From: Rebecca billardiae RCC1528
Lineage: Eukaryota > Protista > Haptophyta
Length of the DNA stretch: 64,000 nucleotides
Assembly: GCA_965240325.2 (NCBI GenBank)
Contig: OZ251225.1
Span: 1,736,001-1,800,000, forward strand
Reading direction: 5' to 3'
Every line of letters begins with the position of its first letter. Position 1 is the stretch's first letter. Below the pieces are notes generated by a model, which saw nothing but the letters and a program-made list of their open reading frames with translations, searched no databases and was not told the origin of the DNA. The translations under genes were made by a program, and so were the position numbers. This document shows positions 26,818 through 38,092 of the stretch, piece by piece.

Positions 26818-27579
26818 GTGTCCTCCTGCACAAAGATTGAAGCGGCGCCAATCGATGTGTATATATACTTGTGTGAGGTGGGGATTTGTCCCTGGATGAC
26901 GGGAAGAGCGACTGAGCCGACGGTGCCAAAGCTGCGCGCAGACTGCGCCAGCGTGTGGCAGCAAGGTCCCTGGCTCAGGCGAGCGTAGCACTCACAGGCC
27001 TGACAACAAGCTAGTCAACCACAACGGAGGCTGCAGGGGCGGATGGCGGGTTGAGCGACGAGCGAGCGAGCACGAGCAAAGAAGCACGCGACGACGAAGG
27101 AGATGGGGCCTCGTTTGCTGATGATGAGGCATGCACACAAGGGGCCGACTGGCCGTAACTGATGAGCAGCTTGTGAGCTCGGCGCGAAAGGCCGTATAAA
27201 GTGCCGATATGTGTGAGCTCGACTGGTTAGTTGCTTGATGAACTGGAAAGCTGCCACTCGGGCTGCAGATGATCTTGGATATGATCTCGAGCGCCGAATG
27301 GAAAGAGGAGCAGATGCAGAAGGAGCCAGCGGCAGCGTGATTGGCAGATATACAAAAGCGGCAGCGGCAGTGATGACGATAACGGAAAGCTTGTCCGAGG
27401 GATGGTCTTGGGAAAGGACGCGCTGGTACAGCTATCCGGATTGGGTACCAGCACGTAGCAACTACCTGCAGGATCAGGTAGACGATGGAGGCCCGCCTTG
27501 GCCTTGGCTGTCACGACACTGCGACGCATCACCTTCCAGCCTCCCGACACATTCGGTTATAACTGCGTTATAACGCCAC
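26818..27579 (+). mobile_element. Unclassified hairpin-GCCAC element, family A, short copy (762 bp)
   Basis: Starts GTGTCCTCC and ends GACAC-ATTCG-GTTATAAC-TGC-GTTATAAC-GCCAC. First 152 bp and last about 525 bp nearly identical to 27580-31760. Head-to-tail with it. Confidence 0.8.
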
Positions 27580-27994
27580 GTGTCCTCCTGCACAAAGATT
27601 GAAGCGGCGCCAATCGATGTGTATATATACTTGTGTGAGGTGGGGATTTGTCCCTGGATGACGGGAAGAGCGACTGAGCCGACGGTGCCAAAGCTGCGCG
27701 CAGACTGCGCCAGCGTGTGGCAGCAAGGTCCAGTTTGTGAGCAGGAGAGATCCCGTTGAGGATGAGGGCGCTGCAGCGAGATGCTGGAGGCGAGCGACAC
27801 GGAGGAGGCCGAAGGTGGCGAGGTGGCACGTCCTCGTTTTTTTTGTGGTTTTTCTTTTGGTAGGTTGTGTGTGTCCTGTGTGCGCGCGCGCGCACGCGCG
27901 CGCCGGTGCGTTGGGCAGAAAAGCCAGAGGCAGCAGCCCCAGCCAGACTGGCAGAAAAGCCTGCAGCAGCTGGATGGGGCAGCTGCTTTCGTCC

Positions 27995-29360
27995 GCCGAG
28001 CATTTGCATGCTCCACGGAACTGGAACAAAACAAAGTCACCCGGGCAGAAAAGCCCGGGCCAGTCGGGCAGAAAAGCCCGGGGCAGCCGCGAAGGGGCCG
28101 CCCCCCCGCCGAGCATACGCATGCTGCGGAACTGGAACAAAACAAGTCACCCGGGCAGAAAAGCCCGGGCCAGTCTGGCAGAAAAGCCCGGGGCAGCCGC
28201 GAAGGGGCCGCCCCCCGCCGAGCATACGCATGCTGCGGAACTGGAACAAAACAAAGTCACCCGGGCAGAAAAGCCAGGGCCAGTAGGGCAGAAAAGCCCG
28301 GGGCAGCCGCGAAGGGGCCGCCCCCCGCCGAGCATACGCATGCTGCGGAACTGGAACAAAACAAGGTCACCCGGGCAGAAAAGCCAGGGCCAGTTGGGCA
28401 GAAAAGCCCGGGGCAGCCGCGCAGGGGCCGCCCCCCGCCGAGCAGACGCATGCTGCGGAACTGGAACAAAACAAGTCACCCGGGCAGAAAAGCCCGGGCC
28501 AGTCGGGCAGAAAAGCCCGGGGCAGCCGCGAAGGGGCCGCCCCCCGCCGAGCATACGCATGCTGCGGAACTGGAACAAAACAAGTCACCCGGGCAGAAAA
28601 GCCCGGGCCAGTCGGGCAGAAAAGCCCGGGGCAGCCGCGAAGGGGCCGCCCCCCGCCGAGCATACGCATGCTGCGGAACTGGACGAACAAAACAAGGTCA
28701 CCCGGGCAGAAAAGCCCGGGCCAGTCGGGCAGAAAAGCCCAGGGCAGCAGCGAAGGGGCCGCCCCCCGCCGAGCATACGCATGCTGCGGAACTGGAACAA
28801 AACAAGTCACCCGGGCAGAAAAGCCCGGGCCAGTCGGGCAGAAAAGCCCGGGGCAGCCGCGAAGGGGCCGCCCCCCGCCGAGCATACGCATGCTGCGGAA
28901 CTGGAACAAAACAAGTCACCCGGGCAGAAAAGCCAGGGCCAGTAGGGCAGAAAAGCCCGGGGCAGCCGCGAAGGGGCCGCCCCCCGCCGAGCATACGCAT
29001 GCTGCGGAACTGGCGGAACAAAACAAAGTCACCCGGGCAGAAAAGCCCGGGCCAGTTAGGCAGAAAAGCCCGGGGCAGCCGCGAAGGGGCCGCCCCCCGC
29101 CGAGCATACGCATGCTGCGGAACTGGAACAAAACAAGTCACCCGGGCAGAAAAGCCCGGGCCAGTCGGGCAGAAAAGCCCGGGGCAGCCGCGAAGGGGCC
29201 GCCCCCCGCCGAGCATACGCATGCTGCGGAACTGGAACAAAACAAGTCACCCGGGCAGAAAAGCCCGGGCCAGTCGGGCAGAAAAGCCCGGGGCAGCCGC
29301 GAAGGGGCCGCCCGGCCCCGCCGAGCATACGCATGCTGCGGAACTGGAACAAAACAAAGT
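27995..29360. repeat. About 110-bp tandem repeat, about 12 units
   Basis: Unit GCATACGCATGCTGCGGAACTGGAACAAAACAA...GGGCAGAAAAGCCC (twice per unit). GGAACTGG recurs 13 times at about 109-113 bp spacing. Confidence 0.95.
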
Positions 29361-36800: not shown

Positions 36801-37345
36801 TGAACATTTGGTGCAAATAAGCCCAGGACTGACTCGGGTTACCCAAAACCGTCACACGGAAGTCCCAGCACATGACCCGTATCCTGGCATTGGCAACCAT
36901 TACTGACTCCAATTCACTCATGCACACAGGTGCACAAACAATACCAAGCCCAAAATCAAGCCCAAAATCACTCATAATCCAAGCTTAGTCCTCACAGACG
37001 AGCGCATATTGGATTGAGGGGGGGTGTCAAAGGAATCGCCAATCTACAGTGATTTCCAATTTCCAATCCAACATTTTACTCGCAGTCACACAGTGGCGGC
37101 GCGACCGCTGCGGCGGCGCTCGCACAAAATCCTCCAAAATCAACGACCTGAACCTCATCCTAAAATACAGCAGGACAGCATGGCTGGCGGCGACCTGGCG
37201 GCGACATCTCGAAGCATTCCAGATGCTTCTTAGAAATGAACGAAACATGAGCCGATCACACAAAACACGCTGAGCTCACCACCGCAAACAAGAGCCGAAG
37301 CTCGACCGCGACTCGACCGTCAAGCTCAAGACGCGTTCCCTGACA
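33857..37345 (+). mobile_element. Gag-only (non-autonomous) Copia-like LTR retrotransposon
   Basis: 321-bp LTRs 33857-34177 and 37025-37345 (TGTCA...TGACA; one mismatch seen). 5-bp TSD GGATT. PPT GAGGGGGGG before the 3' LTR. PBS-like TGCTAGCACGG after the 5' LTR. Confidence 0.93.
34177..36747 (+). CDS. Gag-like protein with CCHC zinc knuckle (true start uncertain)
   Basis: 856-aa ORF. CTHCGLKNHTAQQCWKLHPELRP is a Copia-type CX2CX4HX4C knuckle. No protease, integrase or RT motifs follow. Confidence 0.8.
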   Translation: MLARCWENLGKDGDDENSGKDVNGHQPAPVAPLIGLKPGVAERPAMPRSSSAIARKRTPDYLAAALRGMQAEKNRQGEKLTLLRKPISSAYGPGNTADLNSGSHASSAIAPRVDWLHAESIKDHLEEEVRAQRGEEERCRSHPPPSRHSIRTHVVAQGISTTTARDSAPASAVQERAAESPQLKECLAASESSNEVTERSGADAALDAAAADAALTVEALEPADAARRAGLLAAANDSAVVTAVSLQPRAHDTVSESDRSNDDISTDECDSNDPYGLAEQTMLQDATTRDSVTASSSIKSAAAFIVDAPDDPNKYVYPKTTSLTMASEAELLATSDTSSREMTAAETAESSSGTYRLASNVGSAYDAGGASYICLTAKPQQNQVGERDARAHASAASAITTPHSCKEEYSAEAAADAHASPQDRTSVKKPKEGTTASTRVTPRSKVERESPQSARDISTNALESKKRDWIVIEGGVTDSNPTKKERVFMARESSAGVDTPATHKLTQSALKSKRAVHSAIRDALAEVSTYYKGKSSVVTPDIMEPKDSKLSGFQLIAKDKWVKDAAKIDPYKADNADANKIGSVYDRSAAAIFKQLKDSIEPQLFAYLESKLHISDPTKNYLDLALLLQIFERELKITTMSELRDEFLKLYPTKVSPIGASDIIKKSVEQVRSSRYGNLDDATMLVFKLYNSMHDHPQVYESVISHFGSLTPEQCVDNTDQIMAQMEDAYKRHGSMKLLHQNNTKGRETDNYSKIRQNADYQQGTRRRGDFEGAEVFAAQAQKAPANGESGPNNSDTGKRCTHCGLKNHTAQQCWKLHPELRPKANNYTKGKNKGANKFPKERIHFLDIPAPDAYD

Positions 37346-38092
37346 GGATTTTTGTTCCTCGAAACAAAGTGCGAGCGGCAGCCAGCGCTCGGGCCGAGCG
37401 CGCGGCAGGACTGGCCGCTCGACGCCGACAGACGCGCGGTGTGAGATGATCCCTCCAGCGCGCCGGCCCGCAGAGTGAGAGAGCGAGCAGCATGCCAAAC
37501 CGAGGAACAGATCGATGGCAGAGGGCGCACCGCGCCGACGCAGCGGCGAAAATGCCAGGCAACATCAAGCTGCCAACAGCAGGGGTGGGCGGGTGGGGCA
37601 GCTTGGACGACGCAGCTCGAGAGCCGCCAAGCCGCACGACAGCGAGGCACGAAGGACATCGCGCACAGGGCGCCTCGAAGCTGCGGGCCGCCGGAAACAG
37701 CTGCAGCCATCAGGACAGTGGGCGCTTCCGAAGGGCGCTCGCTGCGAGTGAGCGGGAGGCATGCAGCAGCGACGGTAACGGTTGGCTCGGCGCCTGATGA
37801 AAAACCCAGTTCACGAATTGGCCGTCCTGACCGCCATGCCAACCATGCCTAGTTACCTATGGCCCAGGAGCAGCGCAGTGAGTATAGGTCGTTCTAGGCC
37901 GCCGTGCGTGCGCACAGAGCACTGGCTCGAAAGTCCCTCGTGGGACGAGAAGAGGGTGGCCAAGATGGCAGCCGGACTTGAGCTCGGCCGCCTGGCTCAG
38001 GCTGAATGGCAGGCAGGTGTTGATACGGCGCATTGCGCTCCCACCGTCCTCTTCAAAGACATCAATCAGTTATTATGTGCCAATAACCCCAC

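Follow-up and report, generated by a model that had tools for sequence, protein, structure and literature searches.

We analysed a 64,000-nt stretch of the genome of the haptophyte Rebecca billardiae RCC1528 (assembly GCA_965240325.2, contig OZ251225.1, positions 1,736,001 to 1,800,000 of the forward strand; hereafter the window), in which five repeat units with a hairpin end lie between positions 26818 and 38092 (Table 1). A model that had read the letters alone, whose account we call the original prediction, placed these units in a possibly new rolling-circle or HUH-type class of transposons. After comparing them with related copies in the 72-Mb genome, we consider it highly probable that they are instead the terminal modules of non-autonomous tyrosine recombinase (YR) retrotransposons of the DIRS order, which carry split direct repeats. 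Elsewhere in the genome, units bounded by these ends encode reverse transcriptase (RT), RNase H and YR, and no Helitron Rep/helicase gene lies near the first 100 sites of the terminal motif.

Hairpin-ended units and their insertion sites

A search with the pattern GTTAT-N9-ATAAC-SCCAC, controlled with shuffled sequences and with the reversed pattern, gave five matches in the window, all on the plus strand and ending at 27579, 31760, 32771, 33651 and 38092, where the shuffles led us to expect none. Each of the five units has GT as its first bases and a 19-nt hairpin followed by SCCAC at its other end, which confirms the number, ends and common orientation originally described. The repeat map showed that the two units of family A have both ends in common, as do the two units of family B, and in each pair no base intervenes at the joint (27579/80 and 32771/72), as had been stated. 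The first family B unit begins at 31983 and not within the preceding microsatellite. On their outer sides the units border on (AT)n, (AC)n, (ACAT)n or (GT)n. The shared orientation is antisense to the coding strand of the family, and the five copies amount to three insertions, namely an A pair, a B pair and a solo C unit.

On the coding strand, which is the minus strand of the window, a unit consists of an A module, an optional interior and a B module. GTGGS and the hairpin open the A module, which measures about 450-530 nt, and the B module ends with GACAC or TAGAC. In a complete insertion, read on this strand, a long unit (A1-interior-B1) comes first and a short unit (A2-B2) adjoins it directly. 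The ends of the family A long unit are 66-95% identical to those of the coding master A3L, but the unit has no protein similarity to the open reading frames (ORFs) of the master. Comparison with the master ORFs likewise detected no protein of the element family anywhere in the window, in agreement with the proposal that these copies are non-autonomous. The interior of the family A long unit has been replaced by two satellite arrays, of about 12 copies of an ~109-bp repeat and about 9 copies of an ~205-bp repeat; at other loci the family A composite measures 3.5 to 6.4 kb, a range that may reflect array length. The solo unit of family C is 870 bp long once a nested long terminal repeat (LTR) element has been subtracted.

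The same pattern matched the whole genome 221 times, and its reversed control gave no match; comparisons of the surroundings with other genes cover the first 100 of these sites. We examined the context of 42 distinct hairpin ends: ATAT follows 29 of them, another unit begins directly after 11, and the remaining 2 run into other sequence. At the opposite unit end, most copies have ATAT in front and the others a GT run. This upholds the microsatellite targeting put forward in the original prediction. Nearly all copies have AT repeats on both flanks, and a target duplication and a shared crossover core are thus indistinguishable. We found no published description of near-exclusive insertion into (TA)n by a YR retrotransposon.

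The short-then-long composite of family A recurs with an unchanged internal layout at 6-7 other loci, and therefore the pair moves as a single piece. The family B pair (789 plus ~875 bp) was found at several other loci, and at least 40 genomic copies are related to family C, most of them either full-length or with internal deletions. Copies of families A and C elsewhere mostly keep both ends, while their internal deletions differ. The unit of a further end-family, A3, is 1078 bp long. On contig C11 (G000:C11:1464901-1468420), five B-type hairpins lie exactly 874 bp apart in a head-to-tail array of at least five units.

The element nested in the family C unit is a non-autonomous LTR retroelement bounded by a 5-bp duplication. 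Its two LTRs differ by one mismatch, and a G-rich purine tract stands before the 3′ LTR. The single ORF has no Pfam match. The near-identity of the LTRs suggests that the insertion is recent.

Table 1. Features of the hairpin-unit cluster (positions in the window)
Feature	Position	Strand	Details and basis
Left flanking microsatellite	26530..26817	.	(AT)n, (AC)n, (ACAT)n, (AT)n; direct reading
Insertion 1 (family A), short unit	26818..27579	-	Coding-strand A2 + B2: B2 26818-26969, A2 27053-27579; hairpin 27556-27574, terminal GCCAC 27575-27579; repeats D9, D5, D8
Family A seamless B1-A2 junction	27546..27584	+	GACAC-ATTCG-(8-3-8 hairpin)-GCCAC, then GTGTC; two-stem fold
Insertion 1 (family A), long unit	27580..31760	-	B1 27580-27731, non-coding interior, A1 31235-31760, hairpin 31737-31755; sequence reading and repeat map
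~109-bp satellite array of long unit	about 28025 to 29330
~205-bp satellite array of long unit	about 29409 to 31238
Microsatellite between insertions 1 and 2	31761..31982	.	(ACAT)n, AT-rich stretch, (AT)n
Insertion 2 (family B)	31983..33651	-	Short unit 31983-32771, longer unit 32772-33651; hairpins 32748-32766 and 33628-33646; repeats D6, D10, D11
Microsatellite between insertions 2 and 3	33652..33741	.	(AT)4(GT)n
Insertion 3 (family C), solo unit	33742..38092	-	33742-33856 plus 37351-38092, nested LTR element inside; hairpin 38069-38087, degenerate; pentamer damaged (AAGAC, 8-nt spacer)
Nested non-autonomous LTR retroelement	33857..37345	+	5-bp duplication GGATT on both sides
LTRs of nested element	33857-34177 and 37025-37345		321 bp, TG...CA, 1 mismatch apart
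ORF of nested element	34177-36747		856 aa, single, C-terminal CCHC knuckle
Right flanking microsatellite	38093..38209	.	(AT)n

The fold at the junction between units

Five bases ahead of the hairpin, each family carries a pentamer complementary to its own start, and where two units abut, the pentamer, the hairpin and the start of the next unit form a single structure. All four junction types fold into an outer stem of 5-6 bp, a 5x5 internal loop, an inner stem of 8 bp and a 3-nt loop, with z scores from -2.5 to -4.0 (-6.8 kcal/mol and z -2.5 for the family A junction, z -4.0 for that of family B). The perfect stems occur genome-wide in the variants AAC/GTT, AGG/CCT, AGC/GCT and TG/CA, and the pentamer and start are GACAC/GTGTC in families A, A3 and D and TAGAC/GTCTA in families B and C. 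Across six junctions, four base pairs have changed on both sides, and 94.9% of cells pair, compared with 24-55% in controls with a slid partner. As the junctions are few and related in sequence, these figures support a constraint rather than prove one. The covariation of stem and pentamer across families thus holds, although two of its particulars had to be amended. The pentamers of families A and B are each complementary to their starts, as described, but they differ by two compensated positions, not three. The AAGAC pentamer and longer spacer ascribed to family C are present in the damaged copy of the window but are not typical of the family, whose copies L017 and L028 have TAGAC and a 5-nt spacer.

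The original prediction had compared this dyad with the junction of a circular intermediate, a comparison that we uphold. By analogy with DIRS-1, the B1-A2 junction would be a built-in, resident copy of a circle junction. The palindrome does not have the form of a classical recombinase core site, being centred on the 3-nt loop, with the joint offset by 14 nt to one side. No published description of a covarying two-stem fold at a B-A junction was found.

Deletion derivatives of family A3 bear on how much of each end is needed. They join a fixed hairpin-end module of ~450 nt to the first 5, 65, 181, 238, 271, 285, 625, 2823, 3434 or 6220 nt of the other end, or to its full length. Two independent copies (L013 and L029) keep only GTGTC of that end, and the A3 consensus has no GTGTC at the corresponding internal points. 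This fits the idea that only the five pentamer-pairing bases are needed there. A few family B copies lack the first 4-142 nt and abut (AT)n directly; they may have been dead on arrival or eroded by the microsatellite.

Coding copies of the family

Two A3-type hairpins about 7.7 kb apart pointed to a locus (L040) with a 7771-bp unit (L040:1183-8953) that starts with GTGTCC, ends with the hairpin and GCCAC, and has a 795-bp short unit ahead of it. About 6 kb of its minus strand shows strong codon periodicity (third-position GC), and the gene therefore runs antisense to the orientation in which the units were originally read. This copy has one frameshift and one stop, whereas copies on C3, C11 and C24 hold RT-RNase H in an uninterrupted frame of 1481 aa. 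A word-indexed protein search with the middle of the gene retrieved 21 relatives in other datasets (best E 5e-77), several of which are polyproteins of roughly 2000 aa with C5 DNA methylase and Phage_integrase domains. A second locus (L046) holds a 4831-bp unit with the AGC/GCT hairpin, again with a short unit ahead, and one uninterrupted ORF of 1317 aa that combines RT, RNase H and YR in a single frame.

The catalytic residues of all three enzymes are invariant in an alignment of 12 sequences: D276 (motif A) and D395-D396 (motif C, FTDD) in RT; D569, E606, D631 and D683, together with an N..AD..SR motif, in RNase H; and R1092, K1148, H1235, R1238, W1261 and Y1270 (R-K-H-R-W-Y) in the recombinase. 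The RNase H part is 40% identical to residues 1190-1369 of the relative P0002 (E 2e-33). An AlphaFold model of the RT-RNase H part, searched as one model, has a mean predicted local distance difference test score of 68 with a confident core, and it matches the RTs of MMLV, XMRV, foamy virus, HERV-K, CaMV, Ty3 and HIV (E 1e-11 to 1e-7); the 50 best structural matches listed are all reverse transcriptases. A genome search with Phage_integrase gave five loci, three of which directly adjoin an RT/RNase H coding block of the family, and a fourth, on C12, adjoins a short piece of the coding block and an A3 unit. Upstream, ORF1 (828 aa) starts about 110 nt after the A module and is Gag-like by position alone; it has no similarity to P0002, no Pfam match and no usable match in the ESM Atlas.

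In plus orientation the short unit precedes the long one at L040, L046 and L047, in the A and B pairs of the window and at the 6-7 other family A loci. Because the genes run from the hairpin end, this is the order that an A1-ORFs-B1-A2-B2 layout predicts. A relative from another organism (L050) shows this layout with exact repeats. The genome thus holds the RT-coding masters that the original prediction had said would speak against a rolling-circle family, and these masters are DIRS-like rather than LINE or Penelope-like. The coding interior is gone from most copies, and non-coding derivatives far outnumber the coding copies, with 221 motif sites against about 12; therefore, the mobility of the non-coding copies must be provided in trans.

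Some further features of the coding copies were recorded. A conserved GE(A/T)(S/R/H)(N/H)PGP motif lies between RNase H and the recombinase linker at L046:4440-4470 (G000:C33), at L040:2240-2270 and in a divergent relative on C5; it resembles the 'NPGP' skipping site of 2A peptides, with the glutamate one position off the canonical D-x-E-x-NPGP. That C5 relative (L051:6205-7200; G000:C5:2996205-2997200) is 60% identical to the master and starts on the coding strand with GTGTCCTTGACCC directly after (AT)n. The C5 copy (C5:2996205-3000650) is truncated by a large palindromic insertion (L052:150-250), and a relative at C26:689769-691510 is a bare RT fragment. Locus L047 (G000:C18:1301501-1308200) is chimeric, with an A3-type start, an RNase H-YR interior, a B-type hairpin module, a B unit and an A3 module; this arrangement might have arisen when two families recombined at the conserved junction.

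Replication, competing explanations and significance

The layout described above has clear counterparts among known YR retrotransposons. Ngaro elements have the same arrangement and also leave solo AB repeats (PMC8547959), and the Ngaro/PAT-like group shares with the present family the A1-[ORFs]-B1-A2-B2 structure, the order ORF1, RT/RNase H, YR (PMC8547959, PMC6681497) and the solo AB units. No target duplication is visible in that group; in the present family, one would be indistinguishable from a shared crossover core because of the AT repeats on both flanks. In contrast to that group, the present family inserts almost only into (TA)n, has a covarying 8-3-8 hairpin and 5-bp outer stem exactly at the B-A junction, encodes an RT too divergent for Pfam, lacks a methyltransferase or hydrolase domain, and has non-coding derivatives far in excess of its coding copies. 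In SymbioDIRS elements, too, the layout is A-coding-B-A-B and the RT escapes detection by Pfam (PMC5890265). The nearest protein relatives found here, P0002 and P0003, resemble the SymbioDIRS-Dnmt3 elements of dinoflagellates (de Mendoza et al. 2018, PMC5890265) in carrying C5 DNA methyltransferase (DNMT), RT and YR domains; the copies in the present genome have no DNMT domain, and their ORF1 is the unrelated 828-aa protein. The short units themselves have a precedent in SIRE of trypanosomes, once treated as a separate short repeat and now recognized as the A2B2 part of VIPER (PMC6681497). The short units here are likewise the A2B2 part of a YR retrotransposon, but the sequences, the host and the target are unrelated.

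DIRS-1 offers a guide to how such an element might replicate. Its internal complementary region, which reproduces the circle junction, is thought to bring the cDNA ends together and has been shown to be essential, and a species-specific short circle-junction sequence has been proposed to define the target (PMC7192593). The terminal repeats of DIRS-1 are inverted and its complementary region spans 88 nt, whereas the present family has direct repeats and a 39-nt two-stem junction fold, to which we ascribe a corresponding role by inference. From the Cappello model for DIRS-1, we infer the following putative mechanism. Element RNA would be reverse-transcribed in trans by the few coding copies, giving a single-stranded cDNA with plus-strand polarity, the orientation in which the units were originally read. 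On this cDNA, the outer stem would set the 5′ GTGTC beside the 3′ GCCAC next to the hairpin, and the ends would be closed or templated, forming a closed circle with an AC-GT junction. The recombinase would then join this junction to a TA tract. If a resident copy supplied the partner junction instead, seamless head-to-tail arrays would result, such as the five B units on C11, and also chimeric units such as that at L047.

A more specific version of this model is that the junction fold is a nucleic-acid device that defines the element ends. The outer stem would pair the far cDNA end with a 'guide' beside the hairpin, five nucleotides would suffice, and the fold, together with the recombinase, would direct AC-GT joining into (TA)n. 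We put this forward tentatively and think it less likely than not. It would recall the pairing of guide and cleavage site in IS200/IS605, but in a eukaryotic recombinase retroelement.

Several points weigh against placing the units in the DIRS order or against the role given to the fold. A Pfam search of the master ORFs returned nothing at E 0.01 or at E 10, so that the RT is unrecognised by Pfam, RVT_1 included, and a profile search of PDB sequences with the master gave 0 matches. The recombinase domain of the L046 ORF falls just under the curated Phage_integrase cut-off (E 4e-5; 23.9 bits against 27.1), although the relatives P0002, P0017 and P0021 exceed it. No copy seen contains ORF1, RT, RNase H and YR together, as A3L copies are without YR and YR copies are without ORF1. 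No coding master bearing their own ends was found for families B and C, and their membership is based on end architecture and conserved terminal motifs. The divergent C5 relative begins (AT)n then GTGTCC on the coding strand, the opposite of the main families, which have that end at the 3′ side. Finally, covariation in a palindrome is also expected if a dimeric protein binds both arms of duplex DNA.

Three of these points, namely the missing complete gene set, the missing coding copies of families B and C and the GTGTCC end of one relative on the coding strand, would also be expected if a DIRS-like RT-RNase H-YR block were a passenger that had once inserted into a hairpin-bounded shell of unknown kind. 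We regard this as improbable. The coding block lacks separate termini, ORF1 begins about 110 nt past the A module, and it is the outer modules that make up the split direct repeats. Moreover, the end-families A3 and D, which have different hairpins, carry the block at the same place and in the same direction, and L050 shows the same layout with nothing outside it.

The possibility that the units are non-autonomous rolling-circle transposons of the Helitron2/Helentron type draws on an evident resemblance. Such transposons would leave no target duplication and, like the units, would repeat their 5′ end subterminally and inverted ahead of a 3′ hairpin, contain internal tandem repeats or satellites, stand head to tail and occupy AT-rich targets; the end architecture of the units resembles Helentron ends. 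Helitron RepHel genes are indeed present in the genome, with 5 matches to Helitron_like_N (PF14214) and 13 to PIF1 (PF05970). However, none of these lies near the first 100 motif sites, and three of the five Rep matches (L032, L034 and L031; surroundings read as L036-L039) have no motif around them. The units are without a RepHel partner at these sites, their masters encode RT-RNase H-YR, and on the coding strand the 'hairpin end' is 5′; the sequence of short before long unit and the direction of the genes fit A1-ORFs-B1-A2-B2. Additionally, the termini are GT...SCCAC and not TC...CTRR, and the inverted match is 5-6 bp long, whereas the asymmetric inverted repeats of Helentrons are 12-15 bp. 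We therefore judge this explanation very unlikely. A 2912-aa Helitron-type ORF in one of the regions read (G000:C7:272501-292500; L036/L037), unrelated to the hairpin-unit family, is bracketed by the repeat ggcgactaaccATATATATgac.

For non-autonomous Penelope-like elements of the Chlamys/Naiad type, in which partial tandems form pseudo-LTRs, head-to-tail multicopy non-autonomous copies and a (TA)n/(CA)n bias have been reported (PMC8557442), and the few B copies that lack their first bases beside (AT)n would suit them, but such an origin is the least probable of all, given that the single GIY-YIG match in the genome lies outside such units, that RNase H and a tyrosine recombinase follow the master RT, which resembles retroviral and LTR-type RTs in its fold, and that most copies keep both ends and show internal deletions instead of graded truncation. 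Two other classes were rejected. Cryptons have YR without RT, whereas RT and RNase H share an ORF with YR here. For a long or short interspersed element partner, the genome was searched with RVT_1, and all 55 matches lie more than 10 kb away from the first 100 motif sites, although the RT of the masters is itself invisible to RVT_1.

The placement of the units among DIRS-order retrotransposons removes a false lead, as no new HUH or rolling-circle class is present here. Short hairpin-ended repeats in this genome can be A2B2 modules of recombinase retrotransposons, and they can mimic Helitron2 ends closely. The replication of the DIRS order is poorly understood, and this family gives it defined cis elements: its young copies number in the hundreds, their junction fold covaries and spans 39 nt, some derivatives retain only 5 nt at one end, and the target is almost exclusively (TA)n. 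If the fold does define the element ends, it would be a compact, direct-repeat counterpart of the internal complementary region of DIRS-1, and the family would provide the first sequence-defined microsatellite targeting by a YR retrotransposon.

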